From Macrostomum lignano (lineage: Eukaryota), in NCBI GenBank assembly GCA_002269645.1, contig NIVC01001638.1:124001-188000 (forward strand): 64,000 bases of DNA, in the 5' to 3' direction. The position numbers were made by a program, and so were the translations under genes. The notes under the pieces were generated by a model. The model was not told the DNA's origin. It did no database searches and saw only the letters and a program-made list of their open reading frames with translations. This document shows, piece by piece, positions 10,219 to 47,835 of this stretch; within the stretch, counting starts at the first letter, position 1; each line of letters begins with the position of its first letter.

Positions 10219-10719
10219 AATAGAGCTTCATTTGCTTCGCACACAGACCAAGGAAAATTAAACCGATAAACAGGCGTCATGTGATTAGAACTTAGTATTA
10301 AATTTAGCTCTTTAACTGCACATTTAAATTGACAAAGTTTAGCGGGTGGCAAGCTCCAAGTCACAACGAGTACGTGTACAATCCCTTCCCCAGACCAAAA
10401 GGTGAGATACAGCTTATGAAGTAGCAATGTATAGTGTTTTGAAATGACTTTATTTATAGCTTTCTTTGCAACCCCGTTGGAGAAGAGGAAGAGGCTTAGG
10501 GTACCTATGCCAGTTTAGTGTACAATCTAATTGAGAGTACGAGTATTATAATATGTCCCACAAAACCGGCCTGACTTTCCAAGCACTTGAGCTGATGCTA
10601 AAGATCTTGCGCCGAAAAAACCAGCTTAATGGTGCAGTATAACCCTTCAACGCTCTGGAGACTTTTAGAAAATTTTTTAGATCGATGACTATTATAGAAG
10701 ATTCCAGTTCATCATGGCT

Positions 10720-11240
10720 GGAATTCTCTCTCTTTTCTCTCTCCTCTCTCAATCTCTCCTCTCTTCTCTCTACTATATTTTCTACTTTATATAGAAAATT
10801 ATATAGTATTTTCTACTTTTCTACTTTATATATTTCTACTTTATTTCTACTTTATATTTCTCTTATATATTCTCTACTTTATTTTCTATCTCCTGAGGAG
10901 AGAAGACCTGACGAAGAATTTACCAAATTTAAAATATCGCCAACATTAACATTAACTACATTGACTTATAAGTCCTTTCTTCACCGAATCAGCGCCTTAG
11001 ATTGGTCCTCTCTACTCATTTCTCCCTTCTCTACTCTCTTCTCTCTCATCTCTCTTCTTTCATCTCTCATCTCATCTCCTCTCTTTACTTTCTCTTCTCT
11101 CCTTTCTTTCTCTCTCCTTTTCTCTCCTGCCTTCCCACTTCATTCCCGTCTCACTCCCCTCTTCTCTCCCCTCTCTCTGCTGTCATCGCTATTCTCTTTT
11201 TCTGTCATCACTCATCTCTCATCTCTTCCTTTTTTCTCTT
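10720..11240. repeat. CT-rich low-complexity tract
   Basis: Pyrimidine-rich simple sequence; the Leu/Ser ORFs here are artefacts. Confidence 0.9.
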
Positions 11241-11269
11241 AAGGAATTTAGGATTTAGGATTAGGATCT

Positions 11270-11800
11270 CGAGTACAAAATTTGGTGCCATTTGGAGGGC
11301 TGGTGCAGAATTCCTCCTCAGCTGGAGCGGTGTGTCCAGTGATCGCAAAACTTGTAGGCAGTGGCGACGCGGGCGCGTTCAAGATGGCGGTAAAAAAAAG
11401 TCGCGCAATTCATTCCTGCGCTCCTCCGGGGTGTCGTCGGCCAGGTTCATCGCCACGCACTTTTTTGCGCCCCGTCAGAGTCCGAACGGCCGTCCAGACT
11501 CTGCGCGTCTCTTAACGTCGGGGCCGGCTGCATTGATAGACCGGACGGCGTCACCCGTGCAAATAGTGCTGGCACCTCCTGGCATCGCGGGCCAGATCAC
11601 CAAACAGCGAATGACCTCGGTTGGCTCGGACGGCCGCGCCTCTGCTGCGGCAGCAAAGCGCAGCACACCAAGGGGCACGCAGAGGTCGGCGTGGTGCGGC
11701 CAGGCGCCTGTTGCCCCCAGTCCCTGCTCCGTCGACGTCAACGCCCTCTTCACCTCGATGACTGCGATGATGCAGCAGAACAAGTAGTATGAAGACGCAC
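11270..11800 (-). mobile_element. Probable non-LTR (RTE-like) retrotransposon fragment, linker region preceding the RT
   Basis: GC-rich island; minus frame VWTAVRTLTGAKK...DDTPEERRNELRDFF resembles the pre-RT segment of RTE-like ORF2; no catalytic motif present. Confidence 0.4.
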
Positions 11801-14634: not shown

Positions 14635-15900
14635 ATAATGCATAGGCCTATTAATACAATATTAGTATTAACACTTCTTTTTATTATATTTATAGTTATT
14701 ATACATAGGCCTCAAATTTTACAATTTACATGTTTTATTAAATATAATAAATATTTCGCTTTCGGGCAAAATATTATTGAATTAGGCCTATCATACTAAT
14801 TGTTAAGCAGATATTATACCCATGCCCCATAATAGTCAGGAAAGTGGCTTAGCTCCATAGGCCTAGTCAAGAAGGTGCGCCATGTGTACTTAGAATAAAT
14901 TTCCCCCATTTTTTTCTAATGTGCCATGCACCAAAGCAATGTCAGGATTATGTACTAGTGTCCTACCCCTAGTGCCATTTATGTTGCGGGAATGTTGTAC
15001 AAATGTTGACGCGCAACAAGTGGTAAACGTTGCTAGAAGCGACCGTTTGTCGCGCAAAACAACGTTGCAGAATGGTTGACGCATCAACATTGCAAAATCA
15101 ACATACATCAACATCTGTGCAACATGTAGTCGTCGTGTCTACTATTAGTAGTATCTAATGTATGTGTATTATTCTATATACTACATATATTTCGTATCAC
15201 TTTCATTCTATAATATACGACGACTCTACTATTACACTTGCTTATGTCTTTCTTTCGCATGCCATGCATTAATTTTGGATTGTTGTTAAGGAACTTCTAC
15301 CGGTAGTAACACTGACTACATAGTAAAAAATCTGTAGCTTGCACACAGGTTCAAAAATCGAGACTCCTACATCTTGAAATAATACGAAAATACGGCCATG
15401 ACTTAGCATTTGCTAAAAAGAATAAGTAAAATAGCAAAAAACGTTTCGATTTAAAGGTCTGCGAAGATTAGCTAATGAGCACCATTAATTTTTTTTGTTT
15501 TATCGTAAACACATCAGATCAGACGGTTACCATTATAGTAGGTCAAGAAAGCAATAAAAATATTTACTACATTAGATGCGCATGATGTGTATCTTTGTGT
15601 GTGACTGCAAGCTGCAACCTGCAGTGTTTCTTTTAATGAATAAAAAAGTTAGCAGGAAAATAAGAGATTCGCAAAACTATTATTAATGGCAACTGCTATT
15701 TGCATGCTGGCAAAACAGACATGTCGTTCAGAAAAGATGCAAAGATAACTAGAGATCTGATGGCGATGATTAAAAACAGCTATAGCCTCCAAAGAGATTC
15801 ACCTAACCTAGAGCGAGTCTATACTGATCTTTGTTCTTAGAACTTAGAACAACTAGTTTTATTAAGCCACCAATCCCGTGAAGTCTGAACTCCTATTTAC

Positions 15901-18525
15901 TCAAAGTTGAGTAAGTGTACAACCGTCAACGTTGATGACTTCAAATCGTTGGCCGCCATTGTCATTATCTTCGCTGCTGTCGTGAGCGCCCTCGTCGTCA
16001 GAACTGCTGTCGCTCTCGCCACTTGCATCGCCGTCAGTGTTCATGTCTGCGCCGTCACCTCCGCTTTGCCGAGTGCTCCTTGGGCCTGCAGCCGAGTTCC
16101 GAAGTTCTCCAGTCGGACGCTGTGCGGACTGCTGTGAGCACCTTTTTCGGCGGAACCGAGTGCCTGAGTGGCGCAGATGTTCGCCCACCGCGGATTCAAT
16201 GGCCTCGCCTTTGGCGTCTTTGTGAACACTCCACACGACGTCTAAAAGTAGGTAAATACTGCCCATTAGTTTTGCTTACCCAAAGTAGATTAGTATCTAG
16301 ATATGGACGTACAGAATTGATATATATTTAACTAAGCAGCTTAAATACACATTTTATCATAGAAGAGACAAAATCCTAAGCACCATTATGTTGCTTACTT
16401 TTGATAAAAGGCAGCAGGCCAGTTGACTCAAAGCAATACTTGGAAACGCCAGAACGCTTGGCACCACGGAGACTGAACTGATGAGCAAGCTTGTCATCCA
16501 TGATGTGGTATAAGATATTAGCGACGGACTTCATTAGAGTTTTGCTGGTAAGCCGCTTGAAGAACAGAAACTGAAATGTGTGGAATGAATTCGAATGGTA
16601 GACTAGAAATTGAATTAATAAACTACAAGACATTACACATTAATAGTCATGTCTTGTAATGTGTTATATTCTCTCATAAAATACATGCGGCAGTTAAGCG
16701 GCATCCAGTCGCTTTTGTAAATCGTGCAATGATAAAAATCATACAAAATACTAGCACTCACTGCATCATTTAAGCAGCCTCGATCACTTGTTAGTCGTGT
16801 GGCCCACTCAGTCAGTTTATCGACTTCGGTAAATGGCAGATCTTGAAGTATAGGCCTGTCGGTTGGCTGTTGGCCGTGCTGGGCATTGCTGGAGTTTGCA
16901 CCTGTACTACGAGACGAAGAGTTCTGCAGAGCAAGAAACTGCAGGTGAAAGTCTTTCACCTCTGTAGCCAGGCCACAAATCGCACCATGCATCGCGCGCT
17001 GGGTTGCTAAAATGAAGAAAATTATCGAGAAGATGTATCAGCCAGTCAGGGATAATAGTCAGTTAGTGACTCAAATAGATTATTCTCTATACAAACCAGA
17101 TGAACCTCCGAAACGTTAAGTACAAATTAAAAAGTGTAAATCGCAGCAAAACTCAGAATCATGCGGAGCTGAATGTTTAATAGTGCATTACGCCATTTTA
17201 ATTTAAATCGTAACTTTACTTAATTCTGGAAATGAAGAGCTCGGATTAGAACTTCTAAATTTTCTTATATCAGCGCCTCAGTAGCGAAAGAAATTTTTTT
17301 AGCTGGCTTACTTTCAATCCGCCGCACGGCTGTCACTAGAAAGTCCAATATGTCTGCACGGCTCGCGTCGTAAACGCCAATCGCAGAGGCCGCGGCAGCT
17401 GCAGCAGAAGCAGGATGGTGCTGGATTCCATGCCCCATCGGAGAGGCCGCGGCAGATGCAGCAGAAGCAGGATGGTGCTGGATTCCATGCCCCATCGGAG
17501 AGGCCGCGGCAGATGCAGCAGAAGCAGGATGGTGCTGGATTCCATGCCCCATCGGAGAGGCCGCGGCAGCTGCAGCAGAAGCAGGATGGTGCTGGATTCC
17601 ATGCCCCATCGGAGAGGCCGCGGCAGCTGCAGCTAAATTGGTGCTGGTGCTGAAGCTGCCACAAGAAGACTGTGAAAACGGGCTCAGACTCGATGTAGTA
17701 GCATGAACTGCGCTTGCCAAGATGGCTTCATGTTGGATGGAAGCCAAATTCGAACTGCTGCTTATTGTCAAAGGTGGCCTCGTGCCATCAGGTTGAAACT
17801 TTGGTGGCGCTGACGACTGTCCAGCACTCCGGCTGTTACCCAGTGTAGAGGATTTGCTCTTTGTCGTTCTCTTTCGGCCGGTTTTTCGAGTCTCAATGTC
17901 GAAATTCTCATTGTAATAGTGGTCGACAACTTGAATTCTTCGTGGAGCATCTATATCAGTAGAATCAACTTCTCCCCGACTCTCGTACCGCTTCCGCAGG
18001 TTGACAGCAGCGGGAAATTGATCTGCATGAAGGGGAATAGACACATGTACATGTACACTATATAAAATTACATCCTTTATTATTAGCTATGAAAATTCGC
18101 TTTCACGTGGGACTTAGTCATCCCACATCTAATTAAACAAGAAAAAATATCAACCCCCCGATGTAGATAATAGGAGCCACATTGAAGTACTTTTTTCTAA
18201 TGTATACAAGAAAATAGTACAATAATTGCACTTAAGACTGGCTTCATATGTAATCATAGGCATATCATATATAATCTACCTATTTGAAAATAATTCTGCA
18301 TTAGCACATAAACTCACCTCTCGATCCAATGATGTCGACTTTGTAAGGCAACCAACTATCGTCTGGGACTGACTTCGACTGGTTTGTCAAGCAAGCCTTG
18401 AACTTTTTCAGGGGAGGGCACAAGACGCTGTCGCTGCCCTGAAGCCAGGAACGACGAACGATTTCAATTTCTTCAGTTTCATTGAAGCGAACAACAACAA
18501 ATGCATTCAGGTCGTTTAGACTCAT
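15901..18525 (-). CDS. Spliced EnSpm accessory gene with a DUF4806-like C-terminus (approximate exons 18301-18525, 17265-18044, 16800-16992, 16376-16633, 15901-16240)
   Basis: N-terminal AFVVVRFNETEEIEIVRRSWL; C-terminal SVANILYHIMDDKLAHQFSLRG...AVGEHLRHSG, typical of animal EnSpm accessory ORFs. Exon boundaries are approximate. Confidence 0.6.
17385..17632. repeat. 57-bp coding tandem repeat (ASPMGHGIQHHPASAAAAA), 4 copies
   Basis: Read directly inside ORF 17265..18044. Confidence 0.95.
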
Positions 18526-19024
18526 TCATAGACTTGGCCCGAATATGCTGAAATAAAAGTTGGAGGGAAACAAAGCAAAGTTAGAAAAGCTATCGGATCG
18601 GAACACATTTTCCTTTATTATTTTATAGTACTATGGGTGAAAACGCAACGCATATATTTCAGAAGCCTACCTTCACTAAAAATCTGTTAACAAACAGCAA
18701 AACCATTTTGCGAAGCAAAGAAAACCATCTAAAAAGGGACTGTCATATATTTCGCATGTCTATGCCTAATCATGTCTAGGTCTATATGCGATTGTTGGAA
18801 AGAATTTAATATGAAAGCATGAAATTAGTGACAGCGTGAAATGATAGTATGTTCTTCCCACAAACATTTATATTTTCTAATATTACCTGCTTACTCAGTG
18901 GGAGTGGCTAAAAATGAAACCAACATTTGCTGAATGAGAAAGCAGCTAGCTAGAAGAAGTCAGACAGAGAGTTCATTCAGTTGCTTCCAAACATTTGCAG
19001 AGAAATGCTTGATGTGCGTAGAAG

Positions 19025-20937
19025 CTACGCACAGTCGACCAATGTATGTAAAATAGGGAGAATGCAGGAACGATTTTTGAGACTTACAAGCATCGCTTTA
19101 CCATAGAAATCAGTCCATCGTACAGTTACGAGTGAGTTGCTTAAAGTATTGACAACGGAAATGTGCAGAGACATTGAGTCGAAAGTTTCGTCGTAGAGGG
19201 CGGTTTGCTGAATAAATTTCTTGCCAACGAAAATACAACCGACATCAGTAGAAATTATATGAGTGACTACAACTGCAAATCCATCTCGAGTTAAAATATA
19301 GCAGTCTGGATTAGCAACAGATATATACGTTCCACGCAATACAAGACTAACTTTACGGTAAATACCAAATGTCTGAACTCCTTGCAATGAGAAGTCTACA
19401 TTCGAAGATGCAATTGGACCGGAATATTCAAAAGGCGACTGAATAGAACACATGTGCTTAGGAAAAAAACCGAGAGTCACATCTCTCTCCAGAATTCGCT
19501 TCACAGTCTGCTCGAGAGCAAAACGTGGACTGCGAACAAACTGGGTAATAAAGCGGATAAAATTTTCGCCCCAAAAGCAACTAAAACTATCCAACGGACC
19601 ACGTCGACGAACTTCTGAAGGAATATGAATTATTGAATGCACAGTGTACACATAAACTCGTCACCCCAAATAATTGCACATTCATTAACAATGTGCTTTG
19701 CCAAATCTTCGGCATAAGAGCAGTACGTTTGACAAACCAAAGGATGCGACAATAGGAAAACAAACGAATGCAGAGAAAGAAATAATTGATACACAGATTC
19801 AGGGACGTTTCCAGCTAAAACAATTGGCGCCAAGTACAAAATAAACAATCTAAACTCAGTTGCCTTCCAAAGACCCACGCACTCAATCGACCGTGGCTTT
19901 CGTGCAAAATCATGCGGAATGCAAGACGAAATAGAACACAGATCAGCACTTATCTGACGAATATTAGGTCCAGATGCTCGATGGGGCAAGCGTCCCTTAC
20001 CGAGGAATTTTAAACATTTAGGAACAATACCCTCGTATATTAAGTGCATTGGATCCAGAGGAAAATCATGAACCATGTCGATGGGCAAACTTAAAAAAGG
20101 GCTTGGTAGAAGAACATGATTTGGGTATACATCACCTCTGAAGCCAAAGTCAGTTCGTAGTGCAGCACTTAGGTCAGAAAATGTCACTCTTCCATTACAA
20201 AAGTCCCCTTCAACAGTGCACTTGTCGCAACCAAAGTATCCCCAACATGCTTTTGTTCCTTTTACAAAGCTGCGTGCTGGTGAATCGCAGGTAATCATTG
20301 AAAGTTTAAAAGGTAATATGAGATCTGACTCTGAAGTGACAGTAGAGACAAATCCATCAGCCATCAAATCACGCAATTCAGTAATACAGTCGGCAAGAAA
20401 GTCCGAAGCAGAGAGGGGTTTGCCAGTTCCATAGTAAAGCCCGATTATAAAAACAGAATGAGACAAATTCGAAACTCTACCCAACACAGGCCACAATGTA
20501 TAGGTAGTGCTATTGTGCACTTTTGCACCATCAACAAAAAGGTGGAGGTTCAAGGAATCCAGACGAGAGCGTGATCCAATATTGCTCAGGAGAAAGTCAA
20601 GACCAGCTTTAACGCCAAAATGATAATATCGCCCTGGGTTGACATAGCGAAAAGTAAGCTCCCTTGGTGTAGTCATTAGTCCACGATAGTCAGCAGCTAG
20701 ACCAGGAAACTCGTCTTGTAGATTCTGAAGCAAGTAGTTCACGCACGGCACTTCTGGGCCTGTTGCTTTAACCCAGTCTCGAAGCATGGCCTCGAGTCTC
20801 GCACATTGGTTGTCATCAGAATGAAGGGCTGATTCAATCGTTGAAGAAGTCAGGTTTCCTAAATGTAAGAAATAAATAGCTAGAGTATTATCAAAAACTA
20901 TTAAAAAGATTATGCACATACTTGTTGATAAAATCAC
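19025..20937 (-). pseudogene. EnSpm/CACTA transposase (Transposase_21-like) with a single-base frameshift near 19645
   Basis: HLFVDGA, LWPVLG, TCDSPARSFVKG, GYFGCDKC, PLDPMHLIYEG, WKATEFRLF, VHSIIHIP...GPLDSFSCFWGEN. Confidence 0.92.
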
Positions 20938-26900: not shown

Positions 26901-28837
26901 AGTCAAATTCGGGTGTGGAGTGAACGCCTGAACCGGCTCCTTGGCCCAGACAATCTACGGTTCCCATTTCTCCAGTCGCGAGTTCAGGGCCGGATTTCTT
27001 AGAAGCGTCGTTTTGCCTGCCGCTAAATCCCCCTTGAGAATGTACGAGTTACAGCCTCTGGTTTCTCGGCTGTATCATGCTCCCTCTTCTTGGCAAGCTG
27101 TCGCCAGACTCCTGCAAACACGCCCAGTGCAGAATAGTAATGTTGCTTGGATTGATAGGTGGTATTGCCCCGTCAGTGCTTTGCATTCGCGCAAGGCAGC
27201 CTTTCGATTCGCAGGGTGGGCATTGTGTGTGCAAAAGCCGAGAAAGCTGAAGCTTGGCTTGATTGGAATCCAATGCAGTGGGTTGTAGTCCAATAACTTC
27301 TCAGTTTTCCGCTCTTGCGCTCGACTTTACTGGATCAGGCCTTTCACACTCGCTTCCTGCATCAGTAATTAAATGCCTCAACTGGCTTGACATGACTTAA
27401 ATTTTTTAATCAAACTTCAGATTCATTCTCACTTGAGATAAACCAGGCCCCTCTTTACTGTAACAACCCTTTGAATCCCCCCAGAGGCAGCAAACTCACC
27501 ACGAATTTATCACCGCCCCTCTCCATTCCTGACAAAAGCCAGACCCAAACCAGCGATTTATTTTCCGATATATCAAGACAATCTCCCGCTAGCAAACAAT
27601 TGCAAATGAACAAAGGCCTTTGGACATCTACACAATGTTTTCACATCGATAATATTGTACACTAAATATACGCGCAGATAAACCTCGAGAATGTACGAGT
27701 TAGATTTTAGATCTGGTTTGACTTCAACCAGTTCTCACAACCTCGTCCTCACCTTCGAACACAACGTTGATCTCGTTCTCTAGCTTGCAGCAAAAATTCT
27801 CGTCATCCAAGGCGTTCTTAATCTCTTTTTAAACGCTAGGAGCGTTTCAAACGAGTAGCCAAGAACTTAAAGTTTGTAAACTTAGTGATTAGTCCATTAA
27901 ACGTGTAAAGTCGCTCAGCAAACTTCGTGCCAATGTCCAAACGTTTAGCAACCTTGTCTGTTGACAGCTCAAGTTGATTCTTGAGCGTCGCTAGTACTTC
28001 AGCCTGCTCTCTTCTGGCCAGACATCTTAGGACCTCTAGGACCCCGCAAATGCCTCTAGAGCGTTAAATTGGTGTTGCATGTTTTCTTCGTCGCCTTGCA
28101 AGCAGCCGTGCATAACTGCTTGGCGTTGACAAACCTAAAAGAAATAATATGATATCATAATGTGAATAAGGTCAAAGTTTTGCTTCCATAAACCTCTAAT
28201 CTATAAATCATGTTTTCATCAAGTCAAGAATTAAGTTGAAAATTTTGTGAATAGTCAACCAACCAATCATGCATTCACCAACCAATGGGGGTTTTGGCAG
28301 CTTTTTGGATGACGCACAGGGAAGTTCCCCATTTTGAGAGGTTGTGTGGAAGCTCCTTTTTTCTGAGAATAATGGATGCTGTATGGAGCAGTGTTGGGGG
28401 ATTGTAAGTTCCCCCTTTCATCCAAAATGTACTATTGCTAATGTGAGAATGAGTTGATGTCTGCGTTTAGACTCTTTGAGAGTACACACATACTCTCTTG
28501 AGAGTACTAACTTGAAATGAGTTTTCCAAAATCCTTGAAAAGTTTTACTTAATTTAAATCAATTGAGATAAAATTAACATTTTAGAAAAACCTTCTGAGG
28601 GCATAAGGGCGAGGGCACCTTCCAAAGTAAAAAGTCGCTAGAAAAATTAGGGTCGGTTAATTTATAATAAATATTTCTTATATTAGTGGGGAGGGTCTTA
28701 AAGCAATTTTTAAAGTAGTAAAAAAGTAAAAGTATAGACCCTTGTAGAGTGGGGGCTGCCCTCAGCATTCAGTACCCTCACTGTTTTATAAAATATAAAC
28801 AATATCATATACTAGTTTAGGGGATCTAATAACTAGT

Positions 28838-31410: not shown

Positions 31411-31866
31411 ATCCTAGAAAATTGAAAAAAAAATACGAAGAGAAAGAAGGAAAGAAAGATTGTTGCATATACATTCTATAGCGCACATATATTGTGAGCA
31501 GAAAAACATAAACAGACAAAAATAGAGAGAACAATTCAAGTCAATGACCAAATGGGAGGGACGCGTAGGGATCAACCCAGGCTCGCTTCGTGTCGAAAAA
31601 GCTAAGCGCTTGCTTGTGCTGCTCAAGAAGATAAAGCCGCGACGTAATCGTCCGCACATTCCTCAAAAGCCCGATGATGACAGTCCGATAGCCACCGCCT
31701 CGCGGTCTTCGGCTAAAAATATCCGGCATTCTGTACTTGGACACCACGAAGAATCTCGACTGGAGTCGTGGTTTGAAGCACTCGTGGAGACTTCCTTTCG
31801 ACTTTGGGAGGCTTAGCAACCTTGTCTGTTGACAGCCCAAGTTGATTCTTTAGCGTCGCTAGTACT

Positions 31867-32299
31867 TCAGTAGTACTTCATCAGAAATCCAACCCATTGT
31901 GGAGTAAACGCTGTGTTCTTTTCAAGGCACAAAGTCCGAGGTTGACAGCGCTCGTTCCATGTGGAGATAAATAGTGCCTGCCTAAATTCCATATTGAAGT
32001 GCGTAGTTGTCGATCGTTTTGATCTTTTCCCGAATGGCTTCCAGTTGCTTGGCAACATTCTGGATATCATGCGCGCCTGTTGCGAAGACTTCAGTAGTCG
32101 GTTCCAGAAGATTGCTGCGGTAATCGATAGACTACCGATAGACACTATCGATAGACATCCCATTTTTGAACGCTGCAAAGAGAGAAGACGCAGCCCATTT
32201 CTACCCGATCAGTTGTTTAATAAACAAAAAGCCCAATATTTGCTTACCGTCTCTCACATAACGCTGAGCTAATTCTTTCATTCGGGCGGATTTATCCAT
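31867..32299 (-). pseudogene. Chimeric spliced orphan gene: microprotein exon 1 fused to the C-terminal half of the 53689-family protein
   Basis: Exon 1 32248-32299 (MDKSARMKELAQRYVRD), GT-AG intron 32173-32247, then AFKNG...EVFATGAHDIQNVAKQLEAIREKIKTIDNYALQYGI*AGTIYLHMER; contains stops. Confidence 0.75.
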
Positions 32300-33159
32300 A
32301 GTTGGTTTTTTGAGTGCAATGCGATTGTTAAGACAAGACTAGAAAATCTTCCGTATTACTGTTGGTTGGATATTATATTAAAATAAATTACTCAGGGGAC
32401 GAGTGACCGTGCGGTGGATTAAGGAGGGTCAGGGTTTGTTGAGGTGTAAGGGGGAAGGGGTGGATCGAGTTGGGAGCCGCTAAAATTGTGCTACGCGACG
32501 TAACCTCCCCCATTAAGGGAGCAGGAAGGGGGAGGGCTGGCTGGTGAGGGGTTTCGTGTTGGCAGCTGCTGAAATTTCGCCAAAAGTAGTTATATAAAAT
32601 TACGTCCATAACCAATTTTTCCAATAGCAAAATACGTAATAAGGTACCCGTCAGAAATTTTATTACGCACAACTTATTTTTCTATTCAAAATCAAATAGT
32701 AAGGTACCGAAGCAAATGGTAGGGTATTCTAAAGGAATTCTAACTACACTGACCGCACCTACAAAGAACAAAAGAAAGTAGCTCAATAAAACGCGGGAGT
32801 CAAATCGATGCAGTCAATTTTCAGGCCCCCCTCCCCCCAAGCGAACAAAACGCAGTTCAGAGTAGCGCACAGACAGTAAATAAAGTCAGTTCTGCTTTAC
32901 ACTCGCTCCATAACACACATTGTCTTCTCTACCTCCCAAATAGTGCATTCTGACTACACAATCTACCGCACCACCCACCAAAAACGGCGAAAGAACGAAT
33001 CTCAATTCCTATCAACGAACTTGTCCAAAAACGCATTCACGTTTTATTTCGCTGCATTAAAAGATTTAAAAATCCAGTCGATTGCCAACACTGATTAAGG
33101 ATCTCGGCGGCGCACCCGCGGCGGAGTGCGCATGTACTCACACCAAAAGCGATTAGCGG

Positions 33160-33613
33160 TCTCATCCACCCGAAACGATGCTACACTCCGAATTGACACG
33201 GAGCCGTCGGACTCCAAGCAGCGGTGATAGCCAGCGCCGTCCAAGGAAGTGCAGCGACGGTCGGGCGGCACTCCCCAAGGCGCCGTCGCTACCCCTCCCC
33301 GTGGTTTCCACGCATATTAATTCCCTCCGCCTGGCACGCCGTCCGGATATCATCGATCCGGGCGACCGTCATCAGCTGCCGCGGCGTATAAACGACCGCA
33401 ACGGACACGGCCCTGGCCACGGTGTCTGCGTGGAAGCAGCTGCGGCATTGGAATTCCGTCTCGCTGTCCATCCAGGCGCACGCGCTGGATCTGTGTGCAA
33501 AGCGCAGGAACTGAGGGGCTCCGACACCACTCATCCCGTATGTAGCGCGCTAACGTGGTGAAAACTGCCAGGCGGGACGTGCAGGGCGCGGCTTCGCTCT
33601 GTGTTGGTTCCAT
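33160..33613 (-). pseudogene. Frameshifted orphan ORF of unknown function
   Basis: GC-rich coding-like island; overlapping ORFs 33350..33613 and 33289..33534 join into a plausible single protein (CAWMDSETEFQCRSCFH). Confidence 0.3.
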
Positions 33614-34699
33614 TGTAATTGTAGCCGTGGCTGAAAGTCAGGAAAAATGAATTCTGTTTCTACTCACTGACAATTAATTTTAATCCACTTCTAGACACTG
33701 GGGAACAAGGGCCTAGGTATAAACAAAATCGAATAACTCTTACTGCAGCGGATCCTCTTGAGGTTGGTAGTCGGCGGAGTCTTGTTGCTTGTAGGGCTAG
33801 CTAGCTTGATGAGCGGTGGCGGCGGCCGGTTTCGGTGAACAGCTGTTGTCTCTTGGAGTCCTTAACTTTATCTGTGGGTTACGAAAACGAGAGCGAATTA
33901 AACTTTTGCAGTGTTGTTGGCGTGTCCACGTACTAAGAAGGTAAGTAGTTTTTGATCTAGTAAGCTTGGTGGCTGGAAGTCTCGAGAGAACATTAGGAAG
34001 AACGGTGTGTTCTCTGTTGAACGGTATACTGCGCTGTTTTAGGCCATTGTCACTGACTGTAGATATATAATCCAATTTTCAGGTTACTTATAGACTGTCA
34101 AATGCTTAAAATACTTAAATAAAGCCTAGAACTTATCCAACACTATCTACTAGAGTAGCAAGGTCTGAGAATAAATGAAGCCTAGCTTTGCCTTTGGTTG
34201 TCTAGCTAAGTTAAGAAAGACTAAGCCTATTATAACTGTTAAAAAAACAATTCGAGGTGACTGGTGATTTAACTATTGAAAAATGACTTATAGGTAGTGT
34301 TAGGCTCTACACTAGCCAAATATAGGCAACGTTCTAACAAAAACTATCTAACAAGGGGCAATGGCTACAAGCTCAGGAATTTAACCCATGCAAATTTGCA
34401 TTATTTACGCCTTAAGTTTTATAAACGATAAATTGTATTGAGCAATACACTTCTAACATAAAAATAGACTTCTTTGGGCCTAAAAAACTACAGAAAAAAT
34501 TTGAAACTTATATCTAAATTTTTCTGTCCCTCGGCTTTTTTTTCGAAAGAACAGACTTTTACCAGCTAAATAGTATTAATATTTTTTTAATTTTTGAGCA
34601 AAGTCGTGTCTTATTTTCTACTATAAGCAGCCTCAGTAGTAAAATATCACTATTAATATTAATAAAAGTAAAATAAGTAAAATATTAATAAAATATCAC

Positions 34700-34809
34700 T
34701 ATCACTGTTGTCACGACAACATTGTTACAATGAAGCTGCAACATAAAATGTCACGGCAATATCTGTGCAACACTGTCAACATTGGTACAACATAAACTCA
34801 CACTAGGGG
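34700..34809. mobile_element. Isolated EnSpm-like terminus
   Basis: GCAACA subterminal repeats ending CACTAGGGG, like the right end of the 14966-23955 element. Confidence 0.55.
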
Positions 34810-34899
34810 AGCTCGGTTGCTTCGGAAACGTTAGAGCCAAATCTTCTGAGTCGGCAAGGAAAGTGTTAGATAGCAGTTTTCCTTTAACAGTGTGATATT

Positions 34900-35254
34900 T
34901 TTGTATTTTCGCGAGTCTTGTGGTTTAGCTTGTTGTTAGGCTTGTGGTTGAGCTTGTGGTTGGGCTTCTTGATAAGGCAGCGGAAGTTCAGCAATCCTCA
35001 GCGCATGATTTTCTTGATAATCTTCGACTTGTCTACTGTAATTAGCCGACCTTTTTTTCATATGTCTTGCTTTCGATAAGAGTCTTCAGGAAAGTAATCG
35101 TATTCTTGATTCTTTCCTCTTCAACAGCAAGAATCTCTTCTGAGACGTCAGCGAATAGCGTTTTTGATTTAAGTCTTCAAAGACGATCGGAAGTTGCAGT
35201 TAACTGCATCTGTGCTGCCCTCTTCCTAGTTATTAACGTTGCGTGTCCTGCCAT
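34900..35254 (-). pseudogene. Orphan ORF pseudogene, probable paralogue of 63065..63517
   Basis: MAGHATL...DRL*RLKSKTLFADVSEE...ELPLPYQEAQPQAQPQ; one TGA and one frameshift. Confidence 0.5.
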
Positions 35255-36431
35255 TTTCCAGTGTGTTTTCGAGAAGCGCAGAAAAACTAGATTGAATAAA
35301 ACTCCAGAGTAAAAGACGTTCCCACTTTAAGTATGCTTGCTGAGAATAGAGTGGTATGAAAAAATGTGCGCATGAAAGAAAACCTACTATGTGTACTCAA
35401 AATCTCTTACCCCATTGTGACAGTTTTAAAATGTTTGCTAATTTCGGACAACTGTCGTAAAACTGCCAGATATTTGTCGGCTTAAAACGCTCTTCGTTTA
35501 CTATAGGTAGTCAATCAGACATCCTCTGCATGCTAACATGATCCTCCGAGTCCTAATTTAAGCAAAAAAGTCATGCAAGTTTCAAACAATTTTGAAAAAT
35601 AGTTTGACTTGAAAATGAAAACAACATGGCTAAAATTTTCTTAGAAAAAAAGGAAAGCAACAATCTGAATGTTCGCGATACACTTCCAAAAAATACTATG
35701 ATTCTATTATATCCTATTATGTCGATGGTGAAATCAAGGAATACAAACATATAAAGCCAGTAGTAATGAAAAATTACACAGAGAGCCGTTTTTACCATTA
35801 CGAATCAATGGGTAAGGTACCCGTCAAAAATTGAGTTACACACAGACCCCTTTTTTCCATTACGAATCAATGGGTAAGATAATGCCCCATCCGCTCGTGC
35901 TTTCGACAGAAATTGCAACGATTCTATTCTCGTTTTCTGTCACAAAGAACGAAAGAAATAATATTTTTTCTTTTACTAACCTGTCAAAAGAAACACGATC
36001 TATATCCGATGTATAGCGGGTAGCGACGTTAGAAGAATTGAGGCAAGTAAATAAGTGTAGCAAGTTCGACTTCCATCCTAGACAATTTCATGCGCCACAC
36101 ACACACAGCGAAGAGAGCTAGCCCAGATAACACTTTAGCGCCGAGTCAAAAGGCAGTCAGTCTAGCTTGAAAACCGAGAGAGAAAAGCTGAGCGTTCACC
36201 CCCTCACGAGAGTATGTCTAGCATTATTATTGTATTAGTATATTATACGTTTTTCCTAATACTTTCTGCTTGCATTTTTACTAAAATAAATTAATTCGCG
36301 GTTAACTCGTTTTACTATAGCCATATAAGAAATACACAAGAAACTAAAAATTACAGCGTACGTACAACAGGTGTTTTTCAAAGCTTATACGTTATTAAAA
36401 TACATCAAAGTTCAATGTTACGATTCACATC

Positions 36432-36774
36432 TCAGTTCACTTGATCATCCCTCGTTAAATCAAAATACTCCTCAGACTTTATCTCTCCACATCGTCCATC
36501 CTCGATATTCAAACGATAGCCCTCGCAACCACCACTCGTTGACAGTAGAACCATCTCCACGCGTGCTTGTTCTCTTTCACATATTCCAACGCAATATTCG
36601 TAGCCATGTGGGGGTCTGTTAAATACCCCGTTTTTATGGCTGCAAGAAGTATAAATGTAAAACATTACGCAATGACCATTTAAAGATTTTTGTTAAACAC
36701 AAAGGAGCTAGTAAATGCTTACCTTCTTTGACATAGCGCTCGGCTAAGGCCTTTTTTTGAGCCGAGTTGTCCAT
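36432..36774 (-). pseudogene. One-intron microprotein gene, copy B (1-nt short in an A run at the start of exon 2)
   Basis: Exon 1 36723-36774 MDNSAQKKALAERYVKE, GT-AG intron 36640-36722, exon 2 KNGVFNRPPHGYEY...EYFDLTRDDQVN*. Confidence 0.75.
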
Positions 36775-37368
36775 ATAGCCTCGCTCGTAGCTCGTAATTA
36801 TTCGTAGGTAATTTTTTAAATATTCTTTTGGAACGTGGTAAAGTTGGAATTTTTTCTTTATTAACTTACGCTCGTAAGAGATTGAATGAATGCGCTGGCT
36901 CGTGTTTTAATTCTCTTCGCTCAATAGGATCGCGCACACACACACACACACACACACACATTCAACAAATCAAAGACAAATTCAGTTTTAAGACTGAGAA
37001 GCGGTACTCCCCTCAGTCAACATCAGGGGTTCGGTCAAAAAGCGGAAATGAAATTCTCGAACCTGCTCTCAGCCCGAGAAAAAAGATTAAACAGCACCTT
37101 CACGCTGTTTACAATTTCCAGTGAGCAAACAGACATTGTTGTCTAGGCAACTGCAGCTCGATCTGTTTGAGAGGGTCGCCCTCACCTTTGACGTGGGCAC
37201 ACAATTTCCAAACCTAAATCTCCCACGTGGAATAACTGACGTTGGCAAATAGATCCACGTGCATCATCCCACACAAAGTTGGTCTATAAAAGAAAGCGTA
37301 AAAACCGACCCCTCGATCAAGTGGTAGAGGCCCAAACTCGACGACTGTACTGTTGCGTTCGCCAAAGC

Positions 37369-38225
37369 ATGACTGCCATCACGTCAGAGGACGTCCTAAC
37401 TCTGAGTGCTCTGACGGAGGGAGCAAAAATTAACATCGGTGAGGTCTCGAGGAACGAGGAATGCTCGTTTCGCTCCGTCTCCTGGAGCCGCAAGGGCGAG
37501 AAGAAGAGACATCCACTGTGTCTACAGTCTGAGAAGCAGATTGAGCTGCTTCGTCAACAGAGTGGAGCATCAGCACTCAAGCGCTCAACCAAGCTCTGCT
37601 GAACAACGAGATGAGATCGCACTGTCTTTTCTGGGAGAAGGCTTCTGCAAAACTCTATTCAATACGTTGAGGTAAAATTTTAGCTTTTTTTTCTAGTTCG
37701 AGAAATTGAAGTACGACTAATTAACAAAATCCTATTCTACACCGTGCAGATTTGTGGAACGGGCAATAGTCCGGGAGTTAGAAGAGAAGGCTGATTCTAA
37801 GACGCTGATTCGCGTGACCTCGTTCTCTGCCCGCAATTCACCTGATGGAAACTCGAGAGAAGCCGTACCTGCAGTGCAACGAGTTACAATTAGGCCAAAT
37901 TTCACCTGCCTTGCCCTTCGCTTAGACGAAAGCAACAGCCGGCCAGAGGGACGAGAGGCCAGGATTGAAGAATTTAAAGAGTTGACTGGCCGATAGCATG
38001 TCAAAATTCAAGTAAATTCACTGTACTGTCCTGCTAAACCGGGGACCAACTGAAGGCTCTCGTTCGCACTTCGCTCCATTGTGCTCACCGAGTGCAACCC
38101 GAATCGGCTGGAGACATTCGCAGTGCTTCGCAGACAAGTCCAACTAATTCCAACTACACTGTACCGCACCCACAAAGAACGAGAAAGAAAGACCCCAACA
38201 ACACCGATCAACCAAGTTGCTGAAA
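37369..38225 (+). pseudogene. Frameshifted spliced orphan gene, tentatively of the 53689 family
   Basis: Coding-like segments with a putative intron ~37672-37748; EGREARIEEFKEL resembles NEKEARIEELNKI of ORF 53689..54360. Confidence 0.35.
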
Positions 38226-38905
38226 AACGACATAGCTATTTCTGCATTACAAGAATAGAGGAAACACGCACCCACAAAGAACAAAAGAAAAGATCTTAAT
38301 AAATTGCAGAATTCAAAATTGTGCCAAAATCCCTCTGCAAGCAAAACCCAGCTCAGATCAGGACACAGGCAGTAAATAAGCCACCTGCTGCGCCCAGCCT
38401 TTTGTAACATGAGTCTTTCAAGACCCCAATTTTTTAATTTTCGAGAAAAGACCATTGAGACTTACGAAACTAAATATACTTGAATACAACTTGACTAAAA
38501 TATAATACGCCAAAAAAATATGCAGTTTTTAACTCTCAGTCACTGATCGACAAACCGATCACATCCGAAAAACCGGGTAATTGTAAGTGTTGCTGTGACA
38601 AGATTCTTCTGAGTTCGCTACTGACGGCCATGCACAATAATAAACTGAACCATCGTAGTAAGAAACAGTCTTTCGGTCGAATCAAGTTGACATGTCTATA
38701 TATTTTAACAGATCGGATACACCTTTAGTTTCATGACGTTAATTTCTTGATGCATGGTAAACCACCACAAATGAACGCAAAATTGCGATTTGACAGTCTT
38801 AAATAACTTTAAAATTCCCTAAAGAATATTGGATAAATAATTACAATACTAATATTACCAAATTATACACGAGAAACTACATATCACTATCGTTCCATTG
38901 CACAG

Positions 38906-39223
38906 TCAGGCGTCCGCAGTCAAATCACAGTAGTCAACAGTAGTGAATCTTCCCGACTCCTTCTCACGGAAAAAGAATCGGAAGCAGCCAGCACCTAGGG
39001 CTTGTACAGCCAGGGTGTATTCACCTTCACAAGCCGTGACATGCTCGGGGTACATATATCCCGGAGGCGGCCGCACAAAGACCCCGTTCTTGAACGCTGC
39101 AAAGAGAGAAGACGCAGCCCATTACTAACTGATCAGCCTCTTAATAAACAAAAAGCCCAATAACTGCTTGCCGTCTCTCACATATCGCTCAGCTAGTTCC
39201 TTCTCTCGGGCGGATTTGTCCAT
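38906..39223 (-). CDS. One-intron 80-aa microprotein gene, copy A (intact, GC-AG intron)
   Basis: Exon 1 39172-39223 + intron 39097-39171 + exon 2 38906-39096 give 243 nt open: MDKSAREKELAERYVRDAFKNGVFVRPPPGYMYPEHVTACEGEYTLAVQALGAGCFRFFFREKESGRFTTVDYCDLTADA*. Confidence 0.75.
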
Positions 39224-39924
39224 ATTCGTAGTGAGTGAGAGTGTTAAGACAAGACTAGAAAATTTTCCGGACTGCTGTCGGTAGGATCTTATATTCAGCA
39301 AAATTACTCATAGGAACGACTGAGATCTCATGTGGTGGATTAGAAAGGGTCAGAGTTGGTTGAGAGGAAGGGGTGGATCAAGTTTGGAGCCGCCAACGTA
39401 AAGGGAGCGAGAAGGGGGGTTCGTTCTACCCAGTCAGCAGGGGTTTTCGCGTTGGCGGCAGCTGAAATATCGCAACACAGCACAACTATTGCCCCCCCCC
39501 CCAGCGTCACTTCAACGAGTTGGGGGGGGGGTGACTCATTTTGAGTGCCTGGAATTTCAACTTATTGTGCCGCTAGCTACGGTACCTACCATGCAGATCC
39601 CATGGGATTATTTCCACTTCAGTGAGTCATCGCAAGCCTCGGGGAGTGGAGGATGCGTTTTGCCACGTAAACTAGACTATGTCGACTTATCCACGTTGCA
39701 TTATTAGAACAATGGAGCAGCTGAGCTCACACGTGGGGTGGAGCGACCCGAAGCTAACATAGCAACTATAGGGATTATTCAAGCCCAACCCTCAGAAACT
39801 GCCACGTGGCACAAAAAGCCAGATGGCGCCCCTCCCCACCAAATCCTGCTCTAAAAAAGAAAGTAGAAAAATTCGCTCAAACTGCCAACGAGCCAAGGAC
39901 AACAGGAAGCAAGAAATGTTGAAA

Positions 39925-40682
39925 ATTGTACAAGTGTACAAACTTACCACATCCCGATAGCGCAGCTCCACAGTCTCGGTGGCCTCGGCGTGCGGAACAA
40001 AAGCCTCGGTGCGGCCGCCAAACAGGGCTTCCTCCAGACGAATAGGATGCTGGACTTGCGCTCCCTCGTCCTGATAGTCATGCTCCTACATGACACGTAC
40101 ATTGTAGGCAGTGGAGAGCAGGCGAGTGAAGCGCTCAGTCTCCTCATAAATTGCCCGCATTGGCTGGTTCTTGAGCGGGTGCAGCACATCGCCGTTGGGG
40201 AAGCACTTGGGACAGCCATGGTAGAAGCAGCCGTGAAATTGGAGCACCGTCCTAGTCTCTGGGTCGAAGCCATCCACCTTTCGGCCCATGGCGAAAGCCT
40301 CGCCGCCAGAGTCGGCTGTCCGAAACCGGCCGTCAAACTCGGTTGCATTCAAGTGTGCAAGCCAGCACCGCGCCTTGTGCGACTGCACATCTGACCGGCG
40401 AGAAATCACCCCAAGAGTGTTGGGCACCATAAACTTGGTGGTGAATACTGTCATAGATTGTACAAATGCGTCCAGTCCGCAAATGTCCTTAATCAGGCGG
40501 CCGTACTTAAGACAGCCTTCCCGCAATATTAGCGTGTCCTGCAGGCAGTCGTCAAGTATTCCTTGTTAAAATAAAACACTTGGCCCTCCTGCTTTGCCAG
40601 CCAGTCAGCGATGGAGTCGTGTTGCTTATTCTTTTTCCCGCCATACATTTCAATTGAGCAGTAAGGCCCCATGTAGCCCCAG
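39925..40682 (-). pseudogene. Polinton/Maverick protein-primed DNA polymerase B fragment, including the inserted Vsr-like nuclease region
   Basis: GYMGPY...FYFNKEY, ILREGCLKYG...GLDAF, KVDGFDPETRTVLQFHGCFYHGCPKC, LEEALFGGRTEAF, YRDVVSLY (PolB motif A). Confidence 0.88.
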
Positions 40683-41640
40683 TTAAAAATCTCACAGGAG
40701 GCGCGCGAACCGAAAGGCAGCCTGGTGTCGAACATCGTAGTTTCGCAGTCCTGGCTTAGAAAGCGCCACTTTAAACCAGTAAGACAATGGTCATCAGGAC
40801 TGATGGCGACGGACCTGTAGGCATCTTTAAAATCCACTTTGGCCATAAAGGAACCGGGCTTTAAATGCTTTTTGAATTCTCGAACAGAGCCAAAACGGAT
40901 GCCTTTTTCCTGCTGATAGTAGTCCTTAACAGAGTCGCGGAGCGGAGCAGATGGATCGTGAATGAGGCGAACTTTCCCGTTGGCTTTAGGCAAGGCACCA
41001 ATGGGTTCACTTTCACAGGCTCCTGAGTAACGGTGTAGCGGCCGAGCCGAAGCTCATCCAGAAGCTGAGCTTCCACCTTGGCGGCATTCTGGCTAGCGGA
41101 TGCGTAATTATCTCTCAGAGTAGTAATATTAGGTTGCTTATTATTAACCAGACGAAAGCCGTGAACAATACCATTCATCAAATACTGCTTGTCGGGGTCG
41201 TTATGCAACAGTTTTTCCCAAGCAGAAGCCTTAAAGTCGCCAGCAGAGGAGTTAAAATTTGGTTGACGCGGAGGATTAAAAGCACTATAAAATTCACTCA
41301 GTTTTTTGTCTCCTGCATTGGCGGCGAGTCATCAGGACCGCGCTGGAGTAGTTGAGCAGGATGCTGGTGTTAATGGGCAAGATGCTGCCGTCCACAGCCC
41401 TTCACTTTGCAGATGTGGCGGTAAGAGCAGGAGTCTCTCTGGCAACCAGCAATGGCGTTGTAGCTGAGGCACACGGGCCGCGGGCATGCAGGCTGGTCTC
41501 TGCTTTGGGGTAGGCGTACACTGGTTGGTGCATGCAAATGCTTGTGATAAAGCTGAGGTGGCTCGCACCCCCACTGGCTCCCTGTGGAATCGTGCATGAG
41601 CTAGCGGAGGTAGCTGCATGAGGTAGCGGATGCAATTGTT
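40683..41640 (-). mobile_element. DIRS/Ngaro-like tyrosine-recombinase retrotransposon fragment (gag C-terminal Cys/His motif plus RT N-half)
   Basis: WEKLLHNDPDKQYLMNGIVHGFRL, GKVRLIHD, FMAKVDFKDAYRSV, TRLPFGSRASCEIF; upstream CSYRHICKVKGCGRQH. Confidence 0.85.
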
Positions 41641-42275: not shown

Positions 42276-42692
42276 TTGAGTTGGGATGCATTTAAACAAA
42301 GATATGGAGTTGACACAACTAATAATATTGAGTTAACAAAGTGGGCGCGGCAATTAAAAATAAAACCATTCAGATGTGTTATGCGCGATGAAATAAAAGA
42401 TTTACCAAAATATGGGTCTTTCATTGTCAATATTGAAACGACTAAAGAAAACGGTGTACACTGGTCAGCAGTTTATTCAAAACCAAAAGTTGTTTACTTT
42501 TTTTATTCTTATGCATTACCTCCATTGCAGGAAATGGAAGACAAATTTAATCATACAAAAAATCGTTTATGTGGAGATCATCATGAACAATTTCAAACCT
42601 TTGATAAAAGTTATTGTGAACAGGCGGCGTTGTATTTTTTATATCGAAATAATAATTCTAACCAATCGCCCGAAGATTTAAAAATATTTTAG
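42276..42692 (+). CDS. Adenain-like (C5) cysteine protease of Polinton/adintovirus type
   Basis: FIVNIETTKENGVHW, YFFYSYALPP (canonical D replaced), QFQTFDKSYC: catalytic His, oxyanion Gln and Cys in the expected spacing. Confidence 0.8.
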   Translation: MSWDAFKQRYGVDTTNNIELTKWARQLKIKPFRCVMRDEIKDLPKYGSFIVNIETTKENGVHWSAVYSKPKVVYFFYSYALPPLQEMEDKFNHTKNRLCGDHHEQFQTFDKSYCEQAALYFLYRNNNSNQSPEDLKIF

Positions 42693-46879: not shown

Positions 46880-47835
46880 CATCGATAGTAAGTCTGTCCT
46901 CTCGATCAGCGGAGCTGGTACTGGTGCTATTCCACGCCTTTTTACATGACTCAGAATCGAACTTTTCATAGTTTACTTTTCAGTGAATACTTTGTACATT
47001 TCATCACCACTGTCTATGTCGCGGAGTATGAGTGCTACCTTGTACCAAGAATCATAGTCTTGGTCTTGGTTTTTGTGTGCATTATATTTAACAACTTTGA
47101 AACTCCTTCACAAGTGGGTGGTGGAACGTCGCTTTTTAGTGCCTTTTTATCGGATTCTTGGTTTTCCGTTTTATCCTGTGGCTTAATTAATCTATTTATC
47201 TCATCAAGAATTACATCTGGCATGTCTATTAAGCCTTCGGGCTTTATATGTTTGTATTCCTTAATTTCACCATTCACATAATAGAAACCTGGTGGAGCAA
47301 ATACTAAAGCCGGAATATCAAAACCCACTCTTTGTTGAATCGTTACTTTTAATGTATCTACCTTGTTAAAGTAAAAGTGGTGACCCTTGTTTGTCTGAAC
47401 AATCCAATCACAATGAGTCATACACAGTTCATTCAACTCAGGGCATAGGTCAGCATCATCAATATCGATTACGGTTATATTCGAATTTCGAGTATCTATC
47501 CAAATCATGTTGTCTACCTCTGGTCGAAATGGTGGGGAGGTTGAATTCCTATCTGCTTTTGTTGGCATTCCTGACGGTATTTTTTTCTTTGTTTTACTAT
47601 TCCATGTTATACTGCAACTTCCGAATCTAAAATTAAGTTCTCCATAGAGATTAATTAGTTTATCGTACAATTTTGTTTGTTTTAAATTTCTTAACCTTGG
47701 TGGTGGGGCATCATGATTTTGAAGAGGATCCTGTACGATCACAGGAGAGAAACTTAAATCGTTTTGATTTTTTCCTTCCATTTTATTAAAAATAAATTTA
47801 ACAATATAATTCATCAGTTGCAATGTACTTCTCAA
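46880..47835 (-). pseudogene. Bifunctional primase-polymerase (Prim-Pol) domain plus PriCT-2 domain; helicase portion missing
   Basis: ITVIDIDD and QTNKGHHFYF (AEP motifs), VFAPPG; after a frameshift DYDSWYKVALILRD...KKAWNS...DRLTI (PriCT-2-like). Confidence 0.72.

Follow-up and report, generated by a model that had tools for sequence, protein, structure and literature searches.

A tandem cluster of a short two-exon gene that appears restricted to Macrostomum

The 64,000-nucleotide stretch of DNA analyzed here (the window) contains three copies of a short coding unit, all encoded by the minus strand and starting with ATGs at 39223 (copy A), 36774 (copy B) and 32299 (copy C). A fragment of a Polinton-type DNA polymerase lies close to copy A, and the locus raises the question of what these copies are: genes of the host, cargo of a mobile element, remnants of genes, or a repeat that has never encoded a protein. 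Our data support, with a probability of about 0.78, that they are three members of a small protein-coding family restricted to Macrostomum, that is, an ordinary host orphan gene to which the Polinton fragment is incidental.

Three copies and their shared gene plan

Exon 1 is 52 nt in each of the copies, and its translations are MDKSAREKELAERYVRD (A), MDNSAQKKALAERYVKE (B) and MDKSARMKELAQRYVRD (C). It is followed by an intron of 75 nt (GC..AG) in A, 83 nt (GT..AG) in B and 75 nt (GT..AG) in C. Translation and the splice bounds bear out the common first exon that had been described from the sequence-only reading of the window, and the three intron lengths were also as that reading gave them. 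The position and phase of the intron (phase 1, after the codons of the helix and before those of AFKNG) are identical in A, C and two loci of Macrostomum lignano, L001 and L002, that hold annotated relatives. Copy B has its intron in the matching place, with exon 2 out of phase. An AG approximately 50 nt 5' of the ATG is kept in all copies. In the gene plan of the family, a 49-52-nt exon 1 would encode an N-terminal helix that is charged and amphipathic, the phase-1 intron would follow at a fixed position, and exon 2 would encode KNGVF-x-[RQ]-PP and a predicted C-terminal beta-sheet segment that ends in [YF]-x-DL-[TS].

Copy A (38906..39223, minus strand) is the sole intact member, a status based on its translation, its splice bounds, its 81% identity to the M. 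lignano protein PAA71600.1 and its dN/dS. Exon 1 (39172-39223), the 75-nt GC..AG phase-1 intron (39097-39171) and exon 2 with the stop codon (38906-39096) give a fully open frame with an 80-aa product, in agreement with the initial description of this copy. The predicted intron fits the minor GC..AG class of U2-type introns: the donor, G|GCAAGC, has its GC in an otherwise consensus context, and the acceptor, TCTTCTCTCTTTGCAG, has its AG after a pyrimidine tract. Provided that this intron is spliced, copy A would encode a soluble protein of 80 aa. The region upstream of it (39224..39480, minus strand) is 70-79% identical to that upstream of copy C and is probably a promoter or a 5' leader. The 3' flank of copy A (38146..38905, minus strand), which includes a repeat that we call Y (38146-38468), is collinear with positions 10319-11404 of the M. 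lignano locus L001 at ~84-87% identity.

Copy B (36432..36774, minus strand) is an old, diverged paralogue that consists of exon 1 and a 68-codon homologous exon-2 frame. This exon-2 frame, which was used in our searches exactly as it stands, is 37% identical to that of A (tblastn E about 1e-7 to 1e-8) and retains KNGVF.RPP.GY.Y and Y.DLT.D, as had been noticed from the sequence. The view of copy B as a spliced gene fared less well. Under the sole consensus GT..AG pair its two exons are one base out of phase, which is equivalent to one frameshift, and the canonical 83-nt intron fails to join exon 1 to the conserved frame; spliced as it stands, the copy would have an unrelated tail of 59 aa. 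Copy B is probably a pseudogene or else the user of an unusual splice. It may represent an ancient paralogue that was under selection for most of its history and whose exons are now one base out of phase.

Copy C (32159..32299, minus strand) is a 5' stub with one truncation, containing exon 1, the 75-nt GT..AG intron and ~14 nt of exon 2. It aligns with A and with the M. lignano gene as far as 32159, ~14 nt into exon 2, and its frame closes nine codons past that point, giving 30 aa. The earlier suggestion that copy C diverts into another protein after AFKNG was not sustained. The region upstream of copy C (32300..32580, minus strand) is homologous to that upstream of A, and the copy is likely a dead 5' duplicate of the upstream region, exon 1, the intron and those first nucleotides of exon 2.

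The flanks of the copies point to how the array may have formed. A repeat, X (32585..32777), lies just upstream of copy C and has three copies in the M. lignano locus L001 that are 86-87% identical to it. The order in L001 is the gene, then Y, and then repeat X. In the window, the place of X immediately 5' of copy C is the mark of a unit duplicated head to tail. A Y-like segment adjoining X (32736..32883) is 67-82% identical to 38146-38379, and a degenerate X downstream of copy B (35759..35958) is 62% identical to 32585-32777. With all copies on one strand and blocks X and Y in common in their flanks, the three head-to-tail members on the minus strand would have arisen by local segmental duplication.

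Relatives in Macrostomum lignano and selection on the family

No family had been recognized for these copies when they were first described. This held for Pfam, in which copy A, PAA71600.1, the protein model A0A1I8JQG7 and the exon-2 peptide had no match up to E 10, but not overall, as two annotated hypothetical proteins of M. lignano, the GenBank models PAA71600.1 and PAA91589.1, belong to the family. The gene family is consequently not an unannotated one. Copies A and B (exon 2) and these two proteins share similarity across the N-terminal helix, KNGVFx[RQ]PP and the C-terminal [YF]xDL[TS].

The closest relative of copy A is PAA71600.1 (BOX15_Mlig002782g2, UniRef A0A267FCT9), which was matched in a protein search at E 7e-37 with 81% identity over the full length. 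Like copy A, it has 80 aa, a 52-nt exon 1, a 75-nt phase-1 intron and the same stop position, and the flanks of its locus, L001, are 84-87% identical to those of A across about 1.1 kb. It differs in having a GT donor and in its upstream sequence beyond -45. A large palindrome encloses the gene, whose neighbours are RRM_1 and RIG-I-like helicase genes, and no synteny was found between the window and L001.

PAA91589.1 (BOX15_Mlig012951g3) is more distant. It was matched by the profile at E 1e-4 against 1.8 billion proteins, and at E 9e-25 with the four-sequence profile, which itself includes PAA91589.1. It shares with copy A the N-terminal helix, KNGVF-x-Q-PPP, a C-terminal FEYWDLS and the position and phase of the intron; unlike copy A it has 185 aa, with an S/T/Q/P/N-rich insert of ~130 residues, and a 350-nt intron containing tandem repeats. 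A further model, A0A1I8JQG7 (P0002; M. lignano ML2 assembly), has 51 C-terminal residues that are ~90% identical to exon 2 of copy A. Outside these residues, the 333-aa model is unrelated translation of low complexity, and it lacks the PPPGY segment. Exhaustive HMMER searches also produced matches beyond M. lignano to repeat proteins, including the Bacteroidetes-type Ig_7. We rejected these as spurious because such proteins score by adding many weak stretches and because the one tested with hhalign (P0011) had a probability of 0.09%.

The GenBank annotation of M. lignano was built solely from assembled transcripts, and those overlapping repeats were removed (PMC5730564). Because the annotation is transcript-derived, transcription and splicing of the M. 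lignano members are implied (PMC5730564). Mlig002782 names a transcriptional unit in which an RNase P p30/RING gene is included as well (PMC5816591 supplement). The name Mlig002782 had no main-text match in the literature as far as this was covered, and its one supplement match named g6 only. The M. lignano relatives would then be transcribed and cis-spliced, the closest one being cut out of a multi-gene transcriptional unit.

Past purifying selection, which had been proposed from the conservation of protein over DNA, was confirmed by these comparisons. Copy A and the M. lignano L001 gene have a dN/dS of 0.18, with differences of 8, 6 and 21 at the first, second and third codon positions, and in a simulation of 35 random substitutions only 0.05% of outcomes gave 15 or fewer amino-acid changes (P=0.0005). 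Between A and B, pS is 0.85 (saturated) in exon 2 as against a pN of 0.41, and 0.71 in exon 1 as against 0.16. To judge from these sequences, purifying selection on the family is clear, with the tests resting on few comparisons since the database members are only three and all from one species. A dN of 0.09 set against a flank divergence of ~10-15% suggests that the constraint was only moderate.

The predicted protein

The protein resembles nothing in the collections that we searched for domains: neither PHROGs nor a sequence and profile search of the PDB gave a match for the family. An AF2 model, built on a four-sequence alignment and of low confidence (pLDDT 60), had a helix at residues 3-20 and three strands. 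Foldseek comparison of this model with PDB and BFVD returned nothing at E <= 0.001, which is a weak test of the fold given the low confidence of the query. The UniRef name of A0A1I8JQG7, "Agenet-like domain-containing protein", led us to consider an Agenet/Tudor-like small beta-barrel. This candidate was dropped, as Pfam up to E 10 and the PDB profile search were negative and Foldseek, with the same low-confidence model, found nothing.

A signal peptide and a membrane segment are absent: the N-terminus is hydrophilic, and the maximum mean Kyte-Doolittle value over 19-residue windows is not above 0.9. Cysteines are not conserved. These features would be compatible with a small intracellular protein that acts by binding partners, for which the conserved KNGVFxRPP segment and the helix-plus-sheet core are the likely predicted contact surfaces. 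Members of the A type may additionally offer a PPxY motif, a type of ligand that WW domains recognize. The PPGY motif noted at the outset is indeed present in A, within RPPPGY, and in PAA71600.1, but it is absent from B, which has PPHGY, and from PAA91589.1, which has PPPDQ, and so it is not conserved across the family. PPxY-bearing ligands of WW domains include Nedd4-family adaptors and viral late domains. The likeness to them lies in the PPGY of the A-type members; the differences are that the motif is not conserved and that the protein lacks a membrane segment.

An RNA element in the conserved intron was also considered and rejected: Rfam had no match between 31000 and 41000, and the intron folds no better than its shuffles.

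The Polinton-type neighbour and other readings of the copies

The polymerase fragment (39936..40526, minus strand) is a protein-primed DNA polymerase B of Polinton type (closest to P0013, an M. lignano DNA-directed DNA polymerase; PF03175, E 1e-17). It is a single piece with one truncation and corresponds to about 130 residues at the N-terminal end of its closest relative, with no interruption visible inside the alignment. The distance of ~700 bp from copy A reported earlier was accurate, the fragment being 712 nt upstream of the ATG. Abutting it is a reverse-transcriptase-like fragment (40529..41208, minus strand; RVT_1, E 1e-3, below the Pfam cut-off). We also suspected that the ORF at 42276-42692 was a Polinton protease, and searches gave no support for this.

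The proximity of this fragment had prompted the idea that the microprotein serves the nearby Polinton/Maverick-type element, or some new mobile element, as an accessory (cargo) gene, a proposal that did not withstand our comparisons and that we regard as quite improbable. It has in its favor that copy A begins 712 nt downstream of the polymerase fragment on the same strand, that the 185-aa member at L002 is 6.2 kb upstream of, and on the same strand as, an intact polymerase (Endonuclease_7 + DNA_pol_B_2), and that repeated segments X and Y flank the copies. A short gene near a protein-primed polymerase B, at two of the three family loci, is also what likens the family to the accessory ORFs of Polinton/Maverick elements. 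The family differs from them, however, in its spliceosomal intron, whose position is conserved between distant members, in having one polymerase-free locus, and in the lack of relationship between the adjacent polymerases. L001, the locus of the closest relative, is free of polymerases within 10 kb and lies among genes of host type; the polymerases of the window and of L002 did not match each other in tblastn; and the homology of A ends 45 nt upstream of the ATG with L001 and about 260 nt upstream with C, in each case well short of the polymerase fragment. No relatives of the family were found in IMG/VR, in JGI metagenomes or, by fold search, in BFVD, and a search for terminal inverted repeats bracketing the L002 gene was negative in a locus that ends 0.5 kb past the polymerase. 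Of a Polinton bounded by terminal inverted repeats and containing polymerase B, integrase and capsid genes, the window holds only the truncated polymerase fragment, and recurrent linkage to one element lineage together with presence in virus-like contigs was not found. A variant of the proposal is that polymerase B is near two of the three loci for a reason other than chance, the product being a Macrostomum-specific Polinton-linked protein, either shuttled cargo or a host factor, with a fold absent from the PDB; we consider this very improbable.

The remaining doubts concern the copies themselves. It is unlikely, albeit less so than a Polinton origin, that all three window copies are pseudogenes, A included by a change of its donor from GT to GC, with functional members only at other loci. 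In favor of this reading, neither B nor C is intact any longer, fragments of transposons crowd the window and protein A itself was absent from the protein collection searched; given its GC donor, in place of the GT found in the M. lignano gene and in copy C, copy A could be a recently disabled copy. Against this, the frame of A is fully open, most of the changes between A and the M. lignano gene fall at third codon positions, and the GC donor of A is followed by AAG. GC with AAG is the usual donor context of the minor GC..AG class of introns, which is removed by the major spliceosome. It is scarcely credible that there is no gene at all, but a non-coding repeat with chance open frames in its copies. 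Although the region is repeat-rich, the 5' module of exon 1 and intron is better conserved than exon 2 and was duplicated alone in copy C, and 345 of 2000 shuffles of local sequence had an open frame as long as that of B, both the codon-position bias and the simulation indicate coding constraint. In addition, amino-acid motifs are kept between A and B despite saturated synonymous sites, the position of the intron is conserved in a member with 41% identity, and the M. lignano gene models are transcript-derived.

We consequently favor the reading of the copies as members of a host orphan family, and the locus looks like a lineage-restricted host gene cluster. What would have made it interesting is the suggested tie to a Polinton-type virus, for which the evidence at hand gives no support. 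The main value of the finding is in annotation, as it adds one intact, one out-of-phase and one truncated member to a flatworm-specific orphan family. Comparison of paralogues can recover short two-exon genes of this kind that ORF scans miss. With its copies of three different ages, the tandem array illustrates in a small space how a lineage-restricted gene undergoes birth and death.

An intact two-exon gene and its relatives

Copy A lies on the minus strand of the window at 38906-39223, with its ATG at 39223 and a TGA ending at 38906. When the 75-nt intron behind the 52-nt exon 1 is removed (39171-39097; GC donor G/GCAAGC, pyrimidine-rich AG acceptor), an open frame for a product of 80 aa remains, as a sequence-only reading of the window had described. 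Copy A is the sole intact family member in the window, and its intron is of the GC..AG type.

One strong database match to protein A was found, the M. lignano hypothetical protein PAA71600.1 (BOX15_Mlig002782g2, 80 aa), which is 81% identical. Its gene, in locus L001 on contig NIVC01001153.1, has a 52-nt exon and a 75-nt intron as in copy A, but with a GT donor, and is 84-87% identical to the window across ~1.1 kb, intron and 3' flank included. No synteny was found between the window and L001, and the copy A locus is therefore separate. L001 (21881-42198 of its contig) is itself a large palindrome, in which the small gene is followed by an RRM_1 gene and a RIG-I-like helicase, then by an inverted RRM_1 gene and, last, by the small gene's flank again, as an inverted second copy that extends past the locus end.

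Only two further real relatives, both from M. lignano, emerged when 1.8 billion representative proteins were scanned exhaustively with HMMER. P0002, a model of an older assembly, has final 51 residues ~90% identical to A exon 2; an "Agenet-like" UniRef label on it was a lead that was not reproduced. PAA91589.1 (BOX15_Mlig012951g3, 185 aa) resembles the family in its N-terminal helix, in KNGVFTQPPP and in FEYWDLS at the C-terminus, these conserved parts surrounding a long insert rich in S/T/Q/P/N, and its gene (locus L002) has a 350-nt intron whose position and phase are exactly those of the intron in copy A and L001. The other HMMER matches were repeat proteins, including Bacteroidetes-type Ig_7, whose scores sum weak stretches, and they were rejected (hhalign probability 0.09% for P0011, the one tested). 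The window thus derives from Macrostomum, be it M. lignano or a close relative. The family had been described as unrecognised; GenBank already holds PAA71600.1 and PAA91589.1 as hypothetical proteins.

Expression, constraint and protein properties

For GenBank, the M. lignano assembly was annotated solely from assembled transcripts with TransDecoder ORFs, once repeat-overlapping transcripts had been taken out (PMC5730564). Because this annotation was built from transcripts, the two annotated members imply spliced mRNAs. According to the supplement of PMC5816591, "Mlig002782" is a transcriptional unit that also includes, as g6, an RNase P p30/RING gene, and such a multi-gene unit fits the same-strand gene row in L001.

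The suggestion of past purifying selection was borne out. Copy A and the L001 gene differ at 35 nucleotides (8/6/21 by codon position), with a dN/dS of 0.18; of 20,000 simulations that scattered 35 substitutions randomly, at the transition/transversion mix observed, only 0.05% yielded no more than 15 amino-acid changes. Synonymous divergence between copies A and B has reached saturation (pS 0.85 for exon 2 and 0.71 for exon 1), against non-synonymous divergence of 0.41 and 0.16, respectively. The dN of 0.09 between A and the L001 gene, set against a flank divergence of ~10-15%, suggests only moderate constraint. Third codon positions differ at 21 of 81 sites in this pair, faster than the 3' flank (~10.5% mismatches). 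Exon 1 plus the intron is better kept (119/127 identical) than exon 2 (158/191; window 38906-39223 versus L001:10001-10318), which may reflect gene conversion or constraint; the conserved intron had no Rfam match and its fold is not unusual.

Sequence searches of Pfam, PHROGs and PDB gave no family match. The AlphaFold and Foldseek check proposed earlier was run: an AF2 model from four sequences had low confidence (pLDDT 60) and showed residues 3-20 as a helix and three beta strands between residues 44 and 74, and Foldseek searches of PDB and BFVD with this model returned nothing significant. The protein is most likely soluble and intracellular, since the N-terminus is charged, no stretch has the hydrophobicity that a membrane segment would need and cysteines are not conserved. 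The invariant residues are concentrated in KNGVF-x-[RQ]-PP and [YF]-x-DL, and the PPxY motif is confined to A-type members. We infer that it may act as a small partner-binding protein.

Copies B and C and their arrangement

Copy B (start 36774, minus strand) has a 52-nt exon 1 with 65% protein identity to that of copy A, an intron of 83 nt with consensus GT..AG ends, likewise at the same position, and an open exon-2 frame of 68 codons that is 37% identical to A exon 2 (tblastn E ~1e-7 to 1e-8). The frame retains KNGVF, RPP, GY, CE and Y.DLT, in agreement with the earlier description of a diverged copy that keeps most of these motifs. Phase-1 introns had been claimed for all three copies, and the placement of B's intron stands; for B as a working gene the claimed phase does not hold, as joining its exons at the consensus intron leaves them out of phase by one base, with an unrelated tail in the product as it stands. 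Copy B thus has one frameshift-equivalent, unless a non-consensus splice site is used, and is an old out-of-phase family copy. Between copies B and A, two ORFs of 107 and 80 aa, both on the plus strand (37370-37996), may be exons that belong to a further small gene lacking annotation.

Copy C (start 32299, minus strand) combines the same 52-nt exon 1 with an intron of 75 nt of the GT..AG type. Its similarity to copy A and to the L001 gene ends ~14 nt into exon 2, at 32159, its frame closes nine codons further on, giving 30 aa, and ~260 nt of upstream sequence are common to A and C. For these reasons copy C is a duplicated 5' stub, and does not divert into another protein as had been thought. 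Just downstream, a 58-nt direct repeat (31813-31870 and 27945-28002; 96.6% identical, 3.9 kb apart) may mark the ends of an inserted element.

All three copies have the same orientation. In L001 the gene is followed by a repeated segment, Y, and then by another, X. In the window, Y (38146-38468) follows copy A, a degenerate X (35759-35958) follows copy B, and X with a Y-like piece (32585-32883) lies directly upstream of the copy C promoter region. The layout looks like a head-to-tail array of duplication units, which would be of differing ages and would have been broken up by later insertions. Elsewhere in the window, a 28-nt unit is repeated 57 times in a tandem array at 8613-10211 (93% matching), to which a 14/29-nt array at 8054-8224 is related. 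ORFs 47035-47835 (-) and 58542-60740 (-), with weak matches to Prim-Pol and to Transposase_21, DUF1258 and DUF4218, are further mobile-element fragments.

Neighbouring polymerases and the origin of the family

A Polinton polymerase fragment had been placed ~700 bp from copy A, and this was confirmed. For ORF 40086-40526 (-) the match is a DNA-directed DNA polymerase of M. lignano with PF03175 (E 1e-17), the aligned piece (39936-40298) covering the first 132 residues of that relative; taken as 39936-40526 (-), the fragment is a single, truncated piece, and 712 nt separate its end from A's ATG. A C run and a G run ~20 nt apart (39495-39530), an inverted homopolymer pair, sit between A's upstream region and the fragment. 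A reverse-transcriptase-like fragment at 40529-41208 (-) (RVT_1, E 1e-3, below the Pfam cut-off) abuts the polymerase fragment, which suggests that different mobile elements inserted side by side or one inside the other. In L002, an intact protein-primed polymerase B gene (17315-20401, +; Endonuclease_7 and DNA_pol_B_2) lies downstream of the gene for the 185-aa member, at a distance of 6.2 kb. ORF 15753-16181 (+), about 1.1 kb upstream of this polymerase gene, matches the TATA-binding-protein domain (PF00352, E 2e-7); a TBP-like gene beside a Polinton-type polymerase is unusual.

That family loci lie near a polymerase B gene in two of three cases is a residual oddity, for which chance is the simplest reading, as more than half of the M. 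lignano genome is repeats (PMC5730564). The sequence-only reading had considered that the microprotein may be an accessory gene of a Polinton-type virus or of a new element; the viral-accessory interpretation is not supported. L001 lacks any polymerase within 10 kb to either side, and RRM_1 and RIG-I-like helicase genes are its neighbours. Similarity upstream of the ATG ends after 45 nt between A and L001 and after ~260 nt between A and C, in both cases short of the polymerase fragment, and the window fragment and the L002 polymerase do not match each other. Around the L002 gene no bracketing inverted repeat turned up, and scans of IMG/VR and JGI metagenomes and a fold search of BFVD revealed no family relatives. 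Overall, this host gene family is genuine, restricted to its lineage and otherwise ordinary.
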